Shown here one piece after another: positions 14,118 to 33,145 of a stretch of DNA of 64,000 bases. Origin of the DNA: Octopus sinensis (Eukaryota); the NCBI RefSeq assembly GCF_006345805.1, contig NC_042997.1, positions 172,112,001 through 172,176,000 on the forward strand, in the 5' to 3' direction. The notes under the pieces were generated by a model. That model was given only the letters and a program-made list of their open reading frames with translations, was not told the DNA's origin and made no database searches. Each line of letters starts with the position of its first letter. Within the stretch, counting starts at the first letter, position 1. Position numbers and translations under genes: made by a program.

Positions 14118-15024
14118 TAGTTTGAAACATATTGTACTGCAACGAAAGTTTTAATTCTTAAGGGACACCAGCAACAACGATAACCACTGTTGTAATAAGA
14201 AGCTTTGTGTGATTACAATCAGTATTAATTTTGAATAGCTAATTATTGCAACATTGATATAAGCAACAATCCAATTCTTGTCTATTTGCAGTTGTTCACT
14301 AGATGATAGATAGCATTTTCCAGAATTCAGCTAACAGAAAGTAGTTTCAAAAGTTTCAACAGATGCTGCACGGATTTAGCTTAATATTAAACTTCAATTC
14401 ATTATTATTTTCATCTTAATGCAAAAGCAATTTTCGTAATTTTCCCATTTAGTGAGATCTTAATAATTATCTCACACTGCAGCTGCACACAGAACTGACT
14501 TAACCATTTAAGCCTCATTAAATTATATATTTTCATTTATAAATGCAGTGATGTAATCTTAATGTCACAAATTTTAATTATTTATAAATTATTACTTGAA
14601 TTATTACTTGACTTCGAATTATTACTTGACTTTGAGTGTGATGTATTGCTTGTTTGCTTGCTTGCATGCTTACTTGCTTATTTATTTATTATCTGATACG
14701 CTCTCTAAAGATAGGTTTAAAGAGTGTATCAGTTCACCAGTTTATAGAAAGTTCTTTCAATAAATAGAATAGGCTGAGAGCTGGAGCAAAAGAACACCTT
14801 CAATACAACGAAGCATGTTAGATAGGAAAATTTGCTTGTTTCTTTAAATTTTCAATAGAATTATTTTCTTGTTTTCCCAACATACATGAGAAATGAAATA
14901 AGTAACTAAATAAATAAATAAATAAAAACAAACGCATTGAGGAAGATGTTTTATGAATGAAATGAAAATACTTATTATACTGTTTCAACATCGTTTTACG
15001 CCTTTTTTTATTTATCAATGTGTG

Positions 15025-15074
15025 TGCGTGCATGCGTGTGTGTGTGTGTGTATCTATGTATATATATATATATA

Positions 15075-15128
<54 letters not shown>
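15025..15128. repeat. (GT)n/(TA)n microsatellite
   Basis: Visible directly in the sequence. Confidence 0.9.
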
Positions 15129-15130
<2 letters not shown>

Positions 15131-16020
15131 GAAAGATTTGAATACTGAAGTTAGAGAATAATGTGAATAATTGGTTACAGAAAGAGAGGAAAGAAAAATA
15201 TTTCTTTAAATGAAAAATACATTACAAGAAAGAGTTTGAAAAAACAATTATTCCTACATTATATTTACCAAATTTTTTTCTGCCAGATTTTATAATTGAC
15301 ATTTTAAATACAGAATTTCCGTGGCTTTTTAATGTAATCAGTCTATTACACAGATAAAATGCAAATAAAATGTCTAATTCAAATGAAAGATACTTTCCAT
15401 TAAACGCAAATAATAAGAAAAATAATAGCGTGCATTATTTTCTCTGAGACTAGTCTTGTTCTTTTTCGCCTTTTTTTTATTAAAAGATGCCACACCATTT
15501 TGTCACTTCTTGTAGGTTCCATCTTCATTTCTACATAGCTAGATTCACTAACATGATTTCTATTACTATTACTCTGCACTTCTGCTTGTCTCCAGCCAGT
15601 TCCTGCTTTTAACAACCTCTGCTCTTTCTAGTCAATGATCGAGCTACTATATGGTTGCATGACCGGCTAGAAATAGCAGTCAAATCTTCTTGAAATCACA
15701 GCCTATTATATCAAAAAATGATATCTTGGATAATTTGATCCTGAATTTCTTTGTACATTGGAAAAAGAGGTGGTAGTCACACTTGGATGCTTTTGATTCC
15801 TGCTTTGCATGATTAGTGTTGACCAGGTGTTTAACGACAGAAACAACAACAACAAAAAACTCAGCAGTTCTGTTTTTCTGACCTTGCATCACTGCTTGCT
15901 CAACCAGGGTTCCTTTACATGAAACAAGATGCCTGATGAAAAATGAGATGGTCATAAACTGGAGCACTTTTGATCATAGATTTGCACACTGAAAGCTGGC
16001 ACAAAACTGAACAACAAATA

Positions 16021-16190
16021 GGCACAGGTGTGACTGCATGGTAAGTAGCTTGCTGACAAATCACATGGTTCCAAGTTCAGTCGCACTGTGTGGCACCTTG
16101 GGCAAGTGTCTTCTACTATAGCCTCGGGCCGACCAAAGCCTCGTGAGTGGATTTGGTAGACGGAAACTGAAAGAAGCCCGTCATATATAT

Positions 16191-16226
<36 letters not shown>

Positions 16227-16440
16227 ATCTTGTGTTTGTCCCCCCAACATCGCTTGGCAACTGATGCTGGTGTGTTTACATCCCCATAACTTAGTGGTTC
16301 GGCAAAAAGGGACTGATAGAATAAGTACTAGGCTTACAAAGAATAAGTCCTGGGGTCGACTTGCTTGACTAAAGGCGGTGCTCCAGCATGGCCACAGTCA
16401 AAAAGACTGAAACAAGTAAAAGAGTAAAGAGTAAAAAGAG
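16021..16440 (+). mobile_element. SINE family B, full length
   Basis: Head GGCACAGGTGTGACTGCATGGTAAG, core GGCACCTTGGGCAAGTGTCTT and (AAAGAGT)n tail. Confidence 0.85.
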
Positions 16441-19399: not shown

Positions 19400-19760
19400 A
19401 TTTTTAAGTCTGGTACTTTGTCTATTGGTCTTTTTTACTGAAGCACAGTGTAGGGATGCAAACAAACCAGCACCAGTTGCCAAGTGGTGTGGGGGAACAA
19501 ACACAAAAGCACACACTGACACATACATTCACACATGTTTCTCACACACACACACATATTCAATGGGCTTCTACACAGTTTTCATCAACCAAATTCACTC
19601 ACACACACATATTCAATGGGCTTCTACACAGACTTCATCAACCAAATTCACTCACAAGACATTTGTCAGTCTAGGGCAATCATAGAAGAGACTGGCCCAA
19701 GCTACTGCACTGCTGGACTGAACTAAAAACGCCGTGGCTGCAAAGCAAGCAAGCATCATA
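19400..19760 (-). mobile_element. Degenerate SINE family B with an internal tandem duplication of about 52 bp
   Basis: CACACACATATTCAATGGGCTTCTACACAG...TCATCAACCAAATTCACTCAC occurs twice. Confidence 0.6.
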
Positions 19761-19855
19761 ACCACATGGTCATTTCTCCACCAATAAATTTCACAAAGAT
19801 TTTGTTTAAAAATGATGTGAATATAATGAGATAGAGAGAGATAATGAGAAAGAAG

Positions 19856-20131
19856 TGTGGTGTGGTGATGAGGGAGTGTGACAGAGAGGGAGGGAGCGGA
19901 AGTGGGTCTTGCAGGTCTCGCAGGGCGCATGCGCCGGCGGAAGCGGAAGTGAGAGACAGAACGCACGTGCGGCATCGACCAGGGCAGTCAGACACGAGAA
20001 CGACGCCAAGACGACAAGACGCTAGCAAGTTGGCTCAAGGCGAATCCGGCTTCATCTCTGCAGGTAAGACCAAATTACACTTCTAATTCTTTTCCTTGTT
20101 CTGTTACGCTCCTTTCACCACACTTATCACA
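19856..20131 (+). repeat. 5' LTR
   Basis: Direct repeat of 23701-23976. Confidence 0.97.
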
Positions 20132-20143
20132 AGCTATTTCGGC
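20132..20143 (+). promoter_or_regulatory. Putative primer-binding site complementary to the 5' end of tRNA-Phe(GAA)
   Basis: AGCTATTTCGGC abuts the LTR. Its reverse complement GCCGAAATAGCT equals nt 1-12 of human/Drosophila tRNA-Phe as I recall it. Confidence 0.7.
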
Positions 20144-20184
20144 AAAATAATCACTCGGTTTCGTAAAAATAAAAAATAAAAATT

Positions 20185-20940
20185 ATGCAGACTGCTATGA
20201 TTTCACGCGACCCTATAACACCGTTTTGCGGCGACACCGACGTGGTCGCTTGGTTGAGGAGGGTGAAGTTGGTGGCGAAGCTACACGGCATAGCTGACCT
20301 GGCTAGTTTTATGCCGTTGTATTTGGATGGCCCGGCGTTGGCGTTATATCTGGAGATGGAGGAGACGGACCAACGCAGCGCGGACAAGGTGGAGATCCGA
20401 CTTATGGAGGCCTTCGCGGAAGGAATGTTCGAAGCGTACACTCGACTGGGTAGGATGAGGTGGACAGGACAGCAGGTGGACGTGTTCGCCGGCAAGCTTA
20501 GAAGGTTGGCAAAACTTGCGGGATATGAGGGAGAGTCGCTAGAACGCACAGTCAGGTTAGCGTTCGTGACCGGCTTTCCCGACATCATGTCGGTCGAGCT
20601 ACAGAAGCTCCCGAACGTGCGTTCGATGCCGATGGCCGAGATTATATCACGGGCACGTGTACTGGTGTCGTGCAGCAAGTTGACGTCGGTAGCAGCGACT
20701 GCAACGTCGAAAAGTGGCCCAGCTAGGAGCAACGGAGAGGGGCTGGGGAAAGAACGCATGCGATCGTTTAAGGGACAGTGTTTCCGGTGCCAGGGCCCAC
20801 ACATGGTCCGTGACTGCGCGTCGCCCAAGCCTGAGGTGATTTGCTACCGGTGTCGAGAGCCGGGGCATGTGGCCAGCGAGTGTCTGCGGGGAAACGGACC
20901 GCGGGAGACTACTGCGCCGGTAGTTGTCCCTTTGGATTAG
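20185..20940 (+). CDS. gag: Gypsy Gag with two zinc knuckles
   Basis: Intact 251-aa ORF with CFRCQGPHMVRDC and CYRCREPGHVASEC. Confidence 0.92.
   Translation: MQTAMISRDPITPFCGDTDVVAWLRRVKLVAKLHGIADLASFMPLYLDGPALALYLEMEETDQRSADKVEIRLMEAFAEGMFEAYTRLGRMRWTGQQVDVFAGKLRRLAKLAGYEGESLERTVRLAFVTGFPDIMSVELQKLPNVRSMPMAEIISRARVLVSCSKLTSVAATATSKSGPARSNGEGLGKERMRSFKGQCFRCQGPHMVRDCASPKPEVICYRCREPGHVASECLRGNGPRETTAPVVVPLD
20889..20930 (+). promoter_or_regulatory. -1 ribosomal frameshift signal (G GGA AAC plus stem-loop)
   Basis: The heptamer at 20889-20895 is in gag phase, followed by a 7-nt spacer and the hairpin GGGAGACTAC/GTAGTTGTCCC. The pol frame is -1 relative to gag. Confidence 0.7.
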
Positions 20941-21623
20941 TAGCGGCGCGTTTCTCATCGTTACCTGTGGTCGACATTCTGGTGAAGGGGAAGATGTCGC
21001 GAGCCCTGGTGGACACGGGCTGTACGACGACCCTGATGACCACAGAAGTGGCAGAGACGTGGAGTGGAGGAAGCAGTGTCAGGGCAGTCGACGGAAGAGA
21101 AGTGCACTGCAAAGGGGTTACAGATGCGCAGATTGTGGTGCAGGGACTGCAGCTAACGTTGCGAGCGATTGTGGTCGGTCACTTGGTGGACGAGATCGAC
21201 GTGGTGATGGGGATGGATGCGATCACCCGTCTGGGAGGTGTTACCGTCAACGAGGCTGGCGTAACGTTTGGGCTAGCAGGGAAGCCGTGTAGGGCGAGAC
21301 CACGCACCGACGACAACCGTGAGGAAATGGATGCGGCGCACACCATTGAAGACCAGGATTTTCAGGCTGTCTTTGATGGCGAGAGGTGGACAGTGGAGTG
21401 GCACTGGAAGGGAGAGCCCCCGATGTTAAAGAAGAAAGTGGGCTGCTATCAGCATACTCTAAAAGGAGATGCCAGAAGTGAGTTTGAGGGGGAGGTGGAG
21501 CGGTGGATTAAGGAGGGCATACTGATCCCCTGGGAAAAAGAAGAGAGCGGAGTCCTGCCACTGATGGCGGTGATACAGCCCACAAAGCGTAAGGTCGGCA
21601 TACCTTCAGGTTCATGTGGCTGA
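20889..21623 (+). CDS. pol: Gypsy Pol N-terminal part: aspartic protease and start of RT, frameshifted by a deletion near 21597
   Basis: ALVDTGCTTTL, VVMGMDAI and WIKEGILIPW; the frame breaks after QPTKRKV. Confidence 0.88.
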   Translation, partial: GKRTAGDYCAGSCPFGLVAARFSSLPVVDILVKGKMSRALVDTGCTTTLMTTEVAETWSGGSSVRAVDGREVHCKGVTDAQIVVQGLQLTLRAIVVGHLVDEIDVVMGMDAITRLGGVTVNEAGVTFGLAGKPCRARPRTDDNREEMDAAHTIEDQDFQAVFDGERWTVEWHWKGEPPMLKKKVGCYQHTLKGDARSEFEGEVERWIKEGILIPWEKEESGVLPLMAVIQPTKRKVGIPSGSCG

Positions 21624-23664
21624 GAAACTATGGAGGTACCAGCTCGTCAGGTATAGGGGCCGGACGTACTGTCTGACCAGGTTGGGATTCGGGCTGAATT
21701 CAGCTCCGAAGATTATGGCAACAATTCTCAAGGCCGTCCTGGGGAAGGTGGACAGAGTAAAAAGGGCCACCAATTCATACATCGACGACATTCTGGTGGA
21801 TGAAACCGTGATACCAGCAACGGAGGTCATAGGCCACCTGAAGAGTTTGGGACTGATCGCCAAGCCGCCAGAGGCTATGGAGGGAGGTGCTGCACTGGGC
21901 CTCAAGCTATGGAGAGACAAAGCCGGCGCCTTGGTCTTCCGGCGAGGGAATGAGATCCCTGAACTGGGCGCCAGCATGAGTAGACGGGAGCTGTTCTCTG
22001 TGTGTGGGAAGCTGGTGGGACACTACCCGATTGCAGGCTGGCTCCGGACAGCATGCAGCTTCATCAAGAGACGAGCCGAAGGAGTGAAGTGGAATGATAA
22101 AGTGGGGGAGAGGACGATCAACATGATGCAGGAAGTCCTGGTCAGAGTAAGAGCAGAGGACCCGGTGAGGGGCAGCTGGTACGTTCCCAAATCAAAGAGC
22201 GGGATCGTATGGTGTGACGCCAGTAGCATCGCAATAGGGGTTGTCTTGGAAGTGGGAGGTGTCACGGTGGAAGATGCAGCCTGGCTCAGGAAGATGGATG
22301 ACTGCAGTCACATCAACGTGGCGGAGTTGGAAGCCGTGCTGAAGGGGGTGAACCTAACCTTGAAGTGGGGGTTGCACACCATAGAAATCAGGACTGATTC
22401 AGCCACTGTACTTGGTTGGGCGATGGCAGTCATCACCATTGAGCGGAGGGTGCGGACCAAAGGGGCTGCAGAGATGCTGGTAAAGCGTCGATTGGGGATA
22501 CTGCGTGAACTGACCACTGAGTTCAATCTGAAGCTGAGCGTGATCTTTGTGCCTTCCGAGAAGAACAGGGCAGACGTCCTGACCAGGGTTAAGCGAGCCT
22601 GGTTGCAAGTGCCAGAGGATGCGAAGCAGGATGTAGCTGCAGTATGCCATCTGAGCGACTCGGAGTTGCGGAGACTGCACACCATGCATCACATGGGTGT
22701 GGACAGGACGTTGTTCCTGGCCAGAAAAGTCGACTCCGACGTAACAAGACAGAGCGTGCGGAGAGTGGTTAGCAGTTGTAACAGGTGCCAGTCCATCGAC
22801 CCTGCTCCGGTCGTGCATGAAGCGGGAAGTATTCCAGTGGACCAGGACTGGAGACGACTGGCGGTGGACATAACACACTACCGGCAGGGGACATACCTCT
22901 CAATGGTTGACTGCGGACCGGGGCGGTTCGCCATATGGAGGGAGATGAGGTCAGGAACCGCAGAAGAAATTGCGAAAGTGCTGAACGAGATATTCCTGGA
23001 ACGAGGCCCTGTGGATGAACTGCTTCTGGACAACGGCACTGCATTTCGCTCGGAGGCGCTGAGAGAAATGCTTGATGAGTGGAAGGTCAACTGCTTCTTC
23101 AGGGCGGCATACCGGCCAAGTGGAAACGGGGTGGTGGAAAGGCATCATCGTACCATCAAGGCCATGGCAGAGAGGGGTCACATTTCACCAGTCGAGGCCG
23201 TGTTTTGGTACAACATGTCGCCCAGATCAGGACAGGCCGAGGAGTCGGTGCCACACAGGGCAATATTCAGGTACGAGTGGAGGCATCCGTGTACTACATC
23301 AATGCAACCCGGGGCAGAGGAAGAGCAAGCCTTCGTGCAGGTCGGGGAGGAAGTCTGGGTGAAACCCCCGAACGCACGGTGTACATCGCAATGGGGAAAG
23401 GGGACAATAACCTCCGTAAATTCAAAGAATAACATCTCGGTAGATGGTATGCCACGCCACGTTTTGGACATACGGAGGATTGTCCATGCCCCGGAGGATG
23501 GGACAAGCAACAGTGGGCAAGACGATAACAACAGACAGGATGACGAGGTCGGCAGCAACACGCCAGAAACAAGTCCTAGGGTCGCACTGCGACCACAGAG
23601 GGAGCGGCACCCTCCTCCCTGGTTGGCTGACTACGAAACCAGTTTCAGGTGCGGGAGCGAGTGA
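21598..23664 (+). CDS. pol: Gypsy Pol remainder: RT (YIDD), RNase H, integrase (HHCC, DDE, GPY/F-like)
   Basis: AYLQVHVAEKLWRYQ, LGFGLNSAPKIM, YIDDILV, WCDASS, NVAELEAV, RTDS, H..HHMG...CNRC, AVDITH, LDNGTAF and NGVVERHHRTIK. Confidence 0.92.
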   Translation, partial: AYLQVHVAEKLWRYQLVRYRGRTYCLTRLGFGLNSAPKIMATILKAVLGKVDRVKRATNSYIDDILVDETVIPATEVIGHLKSLGLIAKPPEAMEGGAALGLKLWRDKAGALVFRRGNEIPELGASMSRRELFSVCGKLVGHYPIAGWLRTACSFIKRRAEGVKWNDKVGERTINMMQEVLVRVRAEDPVRGSWYVPKSKSGIVWCDASSIAIGVVLEVGGVTVEDAAWLRKMDDCSHINVAELEAVLKGVNLTLKWGLHTIEIRTDSATVLGWAMAVITIERRVRTKGAAEMLVKRRLGILRELTTEFNLKLSVIFVPSEKNRADVLTRVKRAWLQVPEDAKQDVAAVCHLSDSELRRLHTMHHMGVDRTLFLARKVDSDVTRQSVRRVVSSCNRCQSIDPAPVVHEAGSIPVDQDWRRLAVDITHYRQGTYLSMVDCGPGRFAIWREMRSGTAEEIAKVLNEIFLERGPVDELLLDNGTAFRSEALREMLDEWKVNCFFRAAYRPSGNGVVERHHRTIKAMAERGHISPVEAVFWYNMSPRSGQAEESVPHRAIFRYEWRHPCTTSMQPGAEEEQAFVQVGEEVWVKPPNARCTSQWGKGTITSVNSKNNISVDGMPRHVLDIRRIVHAPEDGTSNSGQDDNNRQDDEVGSNTPETSPRVALRPQRERHPPPWLADYETSFRCGSE

Positions 23665-23700
23665 GGAAGCCGGTTCAGTGATCTATAGATCAGGGGGGCG

Positions 23701-23976
23701 TGTGGTGTGGTGATGAGGGAGTGTGACAGAGAGGAAGGGAGCGGAAGTGGGTCTTGCAGGTCTCGCAGGGCGCATGCGCCGGCGGAAGCGGAAGTGAGAG
23801 ACAGAACGCACGTGCGGCATCGACCAGGGCAGTCAGACTCGAGAACGACGCCAAGACGACAAGACGCTAGCAAGTTGGCTCAAGGCGAATCCGGCTTCAT
23901 CTCTGCAGGTAAGACCAAATTACACTTCTAATTCTTTTCCTTGTTCTGTTACGCTCCTTTCACCACACTTATCACA
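23701..23976 (+). repeat. 3' LTR
   Basis: Direct repeat of 19856-20131. Confidence 0.97.
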
Positions 23977-24695
23977 AGAAGGGAGAAGGAAACAGAGTGA
24001 TACTGGTCAATGAATGAAAAGTAGAAGACAAGGAGAAAACAGGATATAGATGGAAGTGGAAGAAGCAAAAAAACATATATCTAAAGTGTTAATATTAGAA
24101 CTGGTAAGATATTTAAACATTCAAAACAAAAAGCTGGAATAATAACATTATGTGAAATGAGAGGTTTTTGATTACATAAATAAATAGATAAATTGATTTT
24201 GATATTAAAATGGGTAATGGGTTAATTAGATTAAATAAAATAATTTCATTTAATTTAATATCATTTTATTTTATCTGTTTGACTTATTCTGCCTTTAAAT
24301 TTCGAAATCTCATTTTATTAAAGCTTAATTCAATCTTATTTCCCTTTTTCTTTTCCCATTCACTATTTCAATATTTTAATTTTTTTTTTAATATGTTAAT
24401 ATTTTATTTATATTTTGACTTCTTCAGAATTAAAGTTTAACTCAAGTGTTTCTTCTTCATAGGCACTTATTGCAAAGGAGATAATCATTTCTTTATAATA
24501 TTTAGTGGGATTAGAAATTTGAATTTTAAACTAAGGAATAATAGGGAAAAAGACGCACACAATTCACATATTTATTTTTTGCTCTTTAATTTAAAAATTT
24601 TTTTCATATATTACAAAATTCTTAAAATTTATAGTTTATAGTAGTAGACATGTAGTTTAATTTCTCTCCCCACCAGTAATGAGAGCACTAATAAA

Positions 24696-30337: not shown

Positions 30338-30716
30338 AAATTTTCAAATTATATTGCAGTCTTTAAGAATAACTGCAAAGGTTCAGTTATCAGGGCCCAC
30401 TGTTGAGTTCCTCCAATTTGCTAGATTTATTTATGCTGCTAACTGATAACAAATCCACAGAATTGCCATACAGACAGAGTGAAACCAGTGCAAAACAATC
30501 ATGTCTGTTTTGTTTCTACTAGAATTATTTTAAAGAGATTAAATTCTGAAGATTGCAGTTCAATAATGTTATTCCGATAACATTATTGATAACATTAATC
30601 AATAGCTGTACAGAAAAGCCATCACAAGGAAATCTTATTTTTGCAGGAATTTTAGTGTATTTTTCCCTTATTACATCAGAAAAATCTTATATACAGCCAA
30701 AATATATCAACATATA

Positions 30717-31116
30717 GGCGCAGGAGTGGCTTTGTGGTAAGTAGCTTGTCTACCAACCACATGGTTCCGGGTTCAGTCCCACTGCGTGGCACCTTGGGCA
30801 AGTGTCTTCTACTATAGCCTCGGGGCGACCAAACCCTTGTGAGTGGGTTTGGTAGACGGAAACTGAAAGAGGCCCGTCGTATATATGTATATATATATAT
30901 ATGCGTGTGTGTGTTTGTGTGTCTGTGTCTGTCCCCTAGCATTGCTTGACAACCGATGCTGGTGTGTTTATGTCCCCGTTACTTAGCGGTTCGGCAAAAG
31001 AGACCGATAGAATAAGTACTGGGCTTACAAAAGAATAAATCCCGGGGTCAAGTTGCTCGATTAAAGGCGGTGCTCCAGCATGGCCGCAGTCAAATGACTG
31101 AAACAAGTAAAAGAGT
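30717..31116 (+). mobile_element. SINE family B, full length and well preserved
   Basis: GGCGCAGGAGTGGCTTTGTGGTAAG...GGTTCAGTCCC...GGCACCTTGGGCAAGTG...GACTGAAACAAGTAAAAGAGT. Confidence 0.9.
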
Positions 31117-31625: not shown

Positions 31626-31712
31626 CCAGGCGAGGAATATATGCAACACAGAAACTGCAAAAATCGGCCCTCATGTGTCAGTATGACTCAAGAAGGTAAC
31701 TTTACCTTTACC

Positions 31713-31715
<3 letters not shown>

Positions 31716-31748
<33 letters not shown>

Positions 31749-31842
31749 TGTGTGTCTGTGTGTCTGTGTGTGTGTGTGTGTGTCTGTGTGTGTCTGTGTG
31801 TGTGTGTGTGTGTATGTGTGTATGTGTGTGTGTGTGTGTGTC
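31716..31842. repeat. (GT)n/(CTGT) microsatellite
   Basis: Visible directly in the sequence. Confidence 0.95.
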
Positions 31843-32449
31843 TTCTGATTTGGACATTGTGAATATGTCTGGCCTTGAGGGAAATATTACCTTATTTGGA
31901 AGCAGGTGATGGTTGATAACAGCAGGAAGAGCATCCAGCCATAAAACAAAATCTACCTCAATAAACTCTGTCCAACCCATACAACCATGGAAGAGTGGAA
32001 AAAAACCATACCACCATGGAAACAATAAGGAGGAGGTGGGCTTGGTTTAACCGAAGCTCATGAAAGAATACACTTGCCCAAGGTACTGCCTGGAGGAACT
32101 GAACCCCAAAAAGCCACACACTTAGAAAATGAACTTCTTACCCTCACAGCTATGCCTGTACAACACAAAAAATGACAATATATGTTAAGCGGATTCAAAC
32201 ACACTGGCTGTGTGTCTTCAGTTCCATAACTTATCCAACACACAACCATTTATCATAGCTTACTTAATAATGGCATATTATATGCAAATTGATATTAATT
32301 TGTCTTGTAATTAGAGAAAAAATCAATAATTTGTATGTTTTATACTCATTGTCCATATAAGACCACTTATAAAAATATTTCAAACAATTTCCTGTCTTTT
32401 TTGTTCAACAAATCAGAGTTATTTTCTTTATAGTTTGAATGTTTTTTTT

Positions 32450-32664
32450 TCCTTTTATGTATGTATGTATGTCTATATATGCATGCAAATGTGTGCTTTG
32501 TATATATGTTATGTATGTGTATGTTTCTATATATGTGTATATGTATATGTGTGCATATCCATGTGTGAGTATTATGTGTGTTCATATGTGTATGCTTATA
32601 TGAGTATGAGTGTCTAAGTGTATATGCATAAGTGTGTGTGTGTATATATATGCATAAATGTGTG

Positions 32665-32712
<48 letters not shown>

Positions 32713-32900
32713 TGTATGTATGTATGTTTGTAAGTATGTATGTATCAGTGAATATGTGTAAGTATATATGTGTATATAAGTGAGTGTGTGTTGGTGTGTG
32801 GGTGTGGGGTTGCCTGTGTGCGTATATGTGTATGTGTGTGTGTGTACATGGATGTGTATGTGTATGTATGTGTGTGTGAGTGGGTGGGTGTGCGGGAGAG
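32450..32900. repeat. Degenerate (TATG)n/(TG)n low-complexity block
   Basis: Visible directly in the sequence. Confidence 0.9.
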
Positions 32901-32959: not shown

Positions 32960-33145
32960 AGTAACCGATGCTGGTGTGTTTATGTGCCCTTAACTTAGCG
33001 GTTCAGCAAAAGAGATTGATAGAATAAGTACTAGGCTTACAAAGAATAAGTTCTGGGTTCGATCTGTTCAACTAAAGGTGGTGCTCCTGCATGGTCACAG
33101 TCAAATGACTGACACAAATAGAAGAATAAGAGAATAAGAGAATAA
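32960..33145 (+). mobile_element. SINE family B, 3' half
   Basis: Matches the family B tail and ends in (AGAATA)n. Confidence 0.7.

Follow-up and report, generated by a model that had tools for sequence, protein, structure and literature searches.

The window analysed here, a 64,000-nucleotide stretch of Octopus sinensis DNA (GCF_006345805.1, contig NC_042997.1, positions 172,112,001 to 172,176,000 of the forward strand), contains a 4.1-kb LTR retroelement at 19856-23976 on the plus strand, to which all coordinates below refer. A direct repeat of about 279 nt at 99% identity lies at 19855-20133 and 23700-23978, and reading of its ends resolves two 276-bp LTRs (19856-20131 and 23701-23976), which run TGTGGTG...ATCACA and differ, by eye, at 2 positions. 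The LTRs are flanked by a 5-bp target-site duplication, AGAAG, at 19851-19855 and 23977-23981. Between them lie a gag ORF of 251 aa (20185-20940) with two CCHC zinc knuckles near its C-terminus (Pfam zf-CCHC, E = 1.1e-6), and a DTG aspartic protease domain (20970-21230) matched by Pfam gag-asp_proteas and Asp_protease_2 on aa 44-130 of the ORF at 20841-21623. The remaining pol ORF of 682 aa (21616-23664) encodes the C-terminal part of RT with YIDD (21778-21789), DUF7047 (21979-22152), RNase H (about 22288-22419), and an integrase zinc finger and DDE core (22666-23118). A polypurine tract core, AGGGGGG (23692-23698), is followed by CG and then by the 3' LTR; the block gatcaGGGGGGcg followed by TGTGGTG is shared with one related locus (L002; L-numbers denote the loci of relatives retrieved in this study), and similar blocks occur in L001, L004, L080 and L345.

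This copy is defective. In a tblastn alignment of an intact relative, P0002, aa 4-227 align to 20991-21596 in frame 2 and aa 271-950 align to 21589-23661 in frame 3, whereas residues 228-270 have no counterpart. The junction at 21589-21596 thus marks an internal deletion with a frameshift, in which about 43 aa of RT, including motif A, are missing, and the copy can neither make its own RT nor demonstrate function on its own. As its nearly identical LTRs suggest a recent insertion, either it was mobilised in trans or the deletion came later.

The twelve bases directly after the terminal CA (20130-20131) of the 5' LTR, AGCTATTTCGGC (20132-20143), do not begin with TGG. As the initial annotation noted, their reverse complement, GCCGAAATAGCT, equals nt 1-12 of tRNA-Phe(GAA) in human, according to a published primer, GCCGAAATAGCTCAGTTGGGAG (PMC10505166), and in Drosophila, according to a 5' probe, GCTCTCCCAACTGAGCTATTTCGGC (PMC7038984). 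The LTR side (ACA) cannot pair with tRNA nt 13-15 (CAG), such that the pairing ends exactly at the LTR boundary. By our arithmetic, a fixed 12-mer would match the 5' end of one of about 50 tRNA families by chance roughly 3e-6 of the time, and the same match recurs in many diverged relatives. We also considered whether the 12-mer might be host DNA from insertion into a tRNA-Phe gene, but rejected this because it lies inside the element, between the 5' LTR and gag, while the target duplications flank the LTRs.

The pol ORF has more than 700 homologues with E below 1e-10, the best of which are 60-68% identical (66-68% for intact relatives), including proteins of Argonauta hians, Oratosquilla oratoria, two Petrolisthes crabs and Aplysia californica, together with many contigs of about 4 kb from metagenome and sequencing-run assemblies. 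A search of IMG/VR with the window's pol, in contrast, found no relatives. We retrieved DNA for ten of these homologues, and for 75 more distant loci from JGI metagenomes using a 16-protein alignment as query. In six genomic copies with both LTRs and a 5-bp target duplication, the site begins at the first base after the 5' LTR: the window element (AGAAG), Oratosquilla L003 (CAGAA), Aplysia L004 (GATCA), Petrolisthes L080 (TAAAC), and Argonauta L001 and L345 (both TCAGT).

More broadly, about 50 distinct relatives (32-68% pol identity) carry AGCTAT-NNN-GGC directly after the (A)CA of the LTR end, 0-51 nt upstream of the first ATG downstream of the site. Named here by the three variable bases, the TTC version AGCTATTTCGGC is found in 16 elements (the window element, Argonauta twice, Aplysia and 12 metagenome loci), CGC (AGCTATCGCGGC) in 10, CAC (AGCTATCACGGC) in 9, CTA (AGCTATCTAGGC) in 5 (Oratosquilla twice, Petrolisthes, L002 and L347), CCC (AGCTATCCCGGC) in 2 distinct elements, CCG (AGCTATCCGGGC) in L050 and L051, and TAC (AGCTATTACGGC) in L047; single loci carry AGCTAGCCGGGC (L034), AGCTACCTCGGC (L033), AGCTAACACGGC (L064) and CGCTACCGAGGC (L055), the last of which reads CGCT rather than AGCT after the LTR. 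Information content is about 1.6-1.9 bits at the ACA of the LTR and 1.1-2 bits across the site except at position 8, and falls to about 0.1 bit from the first base after position 12, position 12 being the one that pairs with tRNA nt 1. As most of these sites were collected with a motif search, the values for the fixed positions are inflated; however, with an anchor that does not depend on the motif (the double CCHC of gag with at least 850 nt upstream), all 15 loci available have the site at the expected distance, 13 matching at 8/9 or better and two at 7/9. The most distant relatives, at 32-35% identity, carry decayed versions at the same place, and no relative with an available 5' leader has a TGG-type site. 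The feature belongs to a whole family and is not, as initially annotated, tied to tRNA-Phe.

Indeed, other members match the 5' ends of other tRNAs. The site AGCTATCCGGGC is the exact complement of nt 1-12 of tRNA-Lys(UUU), which begins GCCCGGATAGCT (zebrafish 5' fragment and probe; PMC4688932), and AGCTAGCCGGGC is the exact complement of nt 1-12 of tRNA-Lys(CUU), which begins GCCCGGCTAGCT (PMC12140204; PMC8216282), while CGCTACCGAGGC matches human elongator tRNA-Met, GCCTCGTTAGCG, at 11 of 12 positions. Three exact matches to the 5' ends of three different tRNAs, at the same position in related elements, cannot reasonably be coincidence. The partners of five common variants (CTA, CGC, CAC, CCC and TAC) were not identified, although their complements keep the general tRNA layout of G1, a 7-nt acceptor strand, U8, A9 and G10-C11-U12. 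The 15-mers made by adding CAG to the complements of four of these (CTA, CGC, CAC and CCC) begin real tRNA genes in IMG/VR contigs. All 11 tRNA genes there that begin GCCTAGATAGCTCAG are tRNA-Phe, one being a eukaryote-type gene on a giant-virus-like contig, whereas the complements of CGC, CAC and CCC begin Thr, Phe, Ile and Met tRNA genes of the phage or bacterial type. Such 5' ends therefore exist, but these are not the tRNAs of the hosts. ARAGORN found no tRNA-Phe in the window or in 60 loci; the only tRNA was a tRNA-Val(CAC) near the Oratosquilla copy, and widening that locus to 22 kb revealed no more.

The variants appear to follow the host rather than the element tree. All copies from named molluscs are TTC and all copies from named crustaceans are CTA, yet in a neighbour-joining tree of the RNase H-integrase region the clade of the window element interleaves TTC elements (the window element, Argonauta and Aplysia) with CTA elements (Oratosquilla, Petrolisthes and L002). 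Although the tree is rough and there are only four named hosts, this pattern suggests that the site adapts to a host RNA and is not simply inherited with the element, and it could serve as a marker of horizontal transfer and host adaptation. As tRNA-Phe of Drosophila, a pancrustacean, begins GCCGAAA (PMC7038984), the crustacean partner of the CTA variant (complement GCCTAGATAGCT) is probably a different tRNA or isodecoder.

Together these findings lead us to favour, with moderate confidence and in the absence of experimental evidence for the primer, the cut or the nuclease, an interpretation in which the 12 bases are the minus-strand primer-binding site (PBS) of a widespread family of LTR retroelements (gag with two CCHC knuckles, then PR-RT-DUF7047-RNase H-IN), and pair with the first 12 nucleotides of a host tRNA rather than with its 3' end. 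Those 12 are the 5' strand of the acceptor stem, U8, A9 and the first three bases of the D stem, and for the window copy the tRNA is tRNA-Phe(GAA), judging from the human and Drosophila sequences. By the logic of LTR replication, the last base of U5 is the first base copied from the primer, whose 3'-OH must then sit opposite 20132, corresponding to tRNA nt 12. A full tRNA annealed by its 5' end offers no 3'-OH there, so a cut between nt 12 and 13 is required, after which the 12-nt RNA left on the template would be extended into U5 and R. The 12-bp duplexes are predicted at -18.7 kcal/mol (for the window copy) to -25.5 kcal/mol, and the zinc knuckles of Gag probably help annealing. We infer that the most likely nuclease is the element's own RNase H, cutting at the end of the RNA-RNA duplex, although a cut after nt 12 lies inside the D stem, where host nucleases do not usually appear to generate 5' tRNA fragments. 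During plus-strand strong-stop synthesis, copying of the primer would run off the 5' end of the tRNA, which would explain a PBS of exactly 12 nt.

The main alternative, which we consider unlikely, retains the pairing but invokes a ready-made host 5' tRNA fragment of about 12 nt, selected and annealed by Gag, with no cutting by the element. It shares the complementarity evidence, 5' tRNA fragments are probably abundant in animal cells, and the two CCHC knuckles could act as annealing chaperones. Described 5' fragments, however, seem to end in the D loop or later, at 14 nt or more, and extra unpaired 3' bases could not be extended; the ACA of the LTR end does not pair with tRNA nt 13-15. Moreover, the same end at nt 12 is used with tRNAs of different sequence, including G12 in the Met-like L055, which fits measurement from the duplex end better than a sequence-specific host cut. 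Less likely still, the 12-mer may be a cis element with another role, such as tRNA capture for packaging, dimerisation or translational control of gag, with the real primer binding elsewhere or not being a tRNA. The gag ATG often lies only 0-20 nt downstream, placing the motif in the translation-initiation region; yet the motif starts exactly where the minus-strand primer should end in every copy with defined LTRs, conservation ends exactly at the first nucleotide of the tRNA, and no alternative PBS was seen, either of the TGG type or as a self-complement.

The unassigned variants leave a slim possibility that the primer is another small host RNA whose 3' end happens to read ...GCC-NNN-AUAGCU, but three variants equal the first 12 nt of three different documented tRNAs, and all variants keep tRNA positions G1, U8, A9 (G9 in L033 and L055) and G10-C11-U12 (G12 in L055), a 3' end for which no RNA class is apparent. 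Self-priming of the Tf1 type, in which the 5' end of the element's own transcript folds back on the PBS and is cut, is the least probable, despite a similar primer-site length and the lack of a TGG start, and here the argument of the initial annotation against it holds across the family. For 42 motif sites (41 loci, including the window element), the best complement of the element's own 12-mer anywhere in the locus, counting G-U pairs as well, was 7-10 of 12 at scattered positions not in the LTR, equal to the shuffled means of 8.3-9.4. In the window element the best is 8/12, below the shuffle mean of 9.1, and the window has no reverse-complement copy with 2 or fewer mismatches.

In Tf1, Tf2 and Tj1 of fission yeasts, and the Tf1/sushi group, a short PBS without a TGG start also lies directly after the LTR, and the primer is the 5'-terminal piece of a longer RNA (11 nt in Tf1, 12 nt here) that has to be released by a cut at the end of an RNA-RNA duplex, which in Tf1 is made by the element's RNase H (PMC4600332); here, however, the piece would belong to a host tRNA. 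Copia of Drosophila and Ty5 of yeast likewise use a host tRNA that must be cleaved internally, with the 5' fragment serving as primer (PMC5371799), but they appear to use initiator tRNA-Met cut in the anticodon loop, with pairing to the anticodon-stem region at roughly nt 25-39, and have IN before RT, whereas here the PBS pairs with nt 1-12, the cut would lie in the D stem, and the tRNAs are Phe, Lys and others. In conventional priming (retroviruses, Ty1, Ty3, most Gypsy and BEL/Pao elements), a host tRNA is again the source, the PBS abuts U5, and lineages use and can switch between different tRNAs; that PBS, however, is TGG followed by the complement of the tRNA 3' end, often 18 nt in retroviruses and shorter in some retrotransposons, and needs no cleavage.

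The reviews we consulted list three ways to start minus-strand synthesis, namely a tRNA 3' end, a tRNA cut in the anticodon loop, and self-priming. We found no description of a PBS complementary to a tRNA 5' end and no paper on DUF7047, although a prior description cannot be excluded as subscription journals and Repbase lay outside the search; a BEL/Pao survey and the Sinbad paper do not mention PBS at all. It is possible, though tentative, that a large and so far unnamed lineage marked by DUF7047, present in molluscs, crustaceans and many unidentified organisms in environmental DNA, starts reverse transcription by a fourth mode, in which the 5'-terminal 12 nt of a host tRNA (Phe, Lys or others, tracking the host) is annealed to the PBS and clipped at the duplex end by the element's own RNase H. 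This mode would link the other two unusual ones, and would provide a concrete role for very short 5' tRNA pieces and for RNA-duplex cleavage by a retroelement RNase H. Such elements would go undetected by PBS finders that test only tRNA 3' ends, and would be untouched by silencing through 3' tRNA fragments while being open to priming or inhibition by 5' tRNA fragments.

The initial annotation labelled the element Gypsy, which is unproven. The pol order PR-RT-RH-IN fits Gypsy (Ty3/Gypsy, Metaviridae), but is shared by BEL/Pao and retroviruses and does not discriminate. RVT_1 scores only 27.9 bits, below its cut-off, there is no Gypsy-type RT_RNaseH hit, and the RNase H instead matches RVT_3 and RNase_H. 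The BEL/Pao (Belpaoviridae) signatures Peptidase_A17, DUF1758, DUF1759 and DUF5641 were likewise not reported at E up to 0.1 for an intact pol (P0002) and gag, and the LTR ends TGT...ACA are compatible with that group but not specific. The family may thus be a separate lineage; a family-profile search of all solved structures finds retroviral integrases best (top E = 1e-15), and HIV-2 RT at 2.5e-5.

The copy in the window carries an internal deletion of about 43 codons with a frameshift at 21589-21596, which removes RT motif A, although its LTRs differ at only 2 of 276 positions. It is a non-autonomous copy, probably either mobilised in trans or damaged after insertion. The block gatcaGGGGGGcg|TGTGGTG, which spans the polypurine tract and the first LTR bases, is identical between the window (23680-23708) and the relative L002 (3935-3960), although their pol proteins are only 66% identical. 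This block is a strongly conserved cis element for plus-strand priming and the integrase end. In many relatives, including the loci L020 (position 3607) and L037 (position 224), the gag ATG lies 0-20 nt after the PBS, and in two it abuts the PBS directly. As these elements therefore have almost no leader between PBS and gag, any packaging signal must lie elsewhere.

In Oratosquilla oratoria (CM102924.1), a tRNA-Val(CAC) gene (L003:2095-2167, equivalent to L106:8095-8167, where L003 and L106 denote the locus of the Oratosquilla copy) lies about 195 bp upstream of the 5' LTR of the element. This proximity could be due to chance or may hint at integration near pol III genes. No other tRNA gene occurs within 22 kb. 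In Argonauta hians, two unrelated insertions on different scaffolds, L001 (2625-2975 and 6681-7031) and L345 (785-1139 and 5258-5612), have the same 5-bp target duplication, TCAGT. In L001, both LTRs end CAAG, with two extra bases (AG) after the usual CA, and the PBS follows directly. Some metagenome contigs, such as L024 (positions 55 and 4116) and L055 (1-90 and 3873-3962), are tandem or circularly permuted, with either an LTR-internal-LTR-internal arrangement or terminal overlaps inside coding sequence, consistent with assemblies of tandem copies or of one-LTR circles.

A eukaryote-type tRNA-Phe(GAA) that begins GCCTAGATAGCTCAGTTGGGAGAGC was found at 2329-2403 of L100, a locus from the 134-kb contig IMGVR_UViG_3300046655_000646, where it sits in a tRNA cluster (Thr, Ser, Phe, Ser). 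The neighbouring genes encode a Ser/Thr kinase, a SWIB domain, a cold-shock domain and a PhyH dioxygenase, and the contig looks like a giant virus. Within the window itself, a dispersed repeat of about 100-400 bp occurs in two or three copies at 68-91% identity on either side of the element (16002-16402, 30698-31094 and 32963-33105), and may be a SINE or MITE-like repeat. Short-period repeat arrays with about 8-nt spacing are present at 14976-15144, 31670-31896 and 32566-32784, and just upstream of the element, at 19540-19650, a unit of about 55 nt (cacacacatattcaatgggcttctacacag...) is duplicated in tandem.
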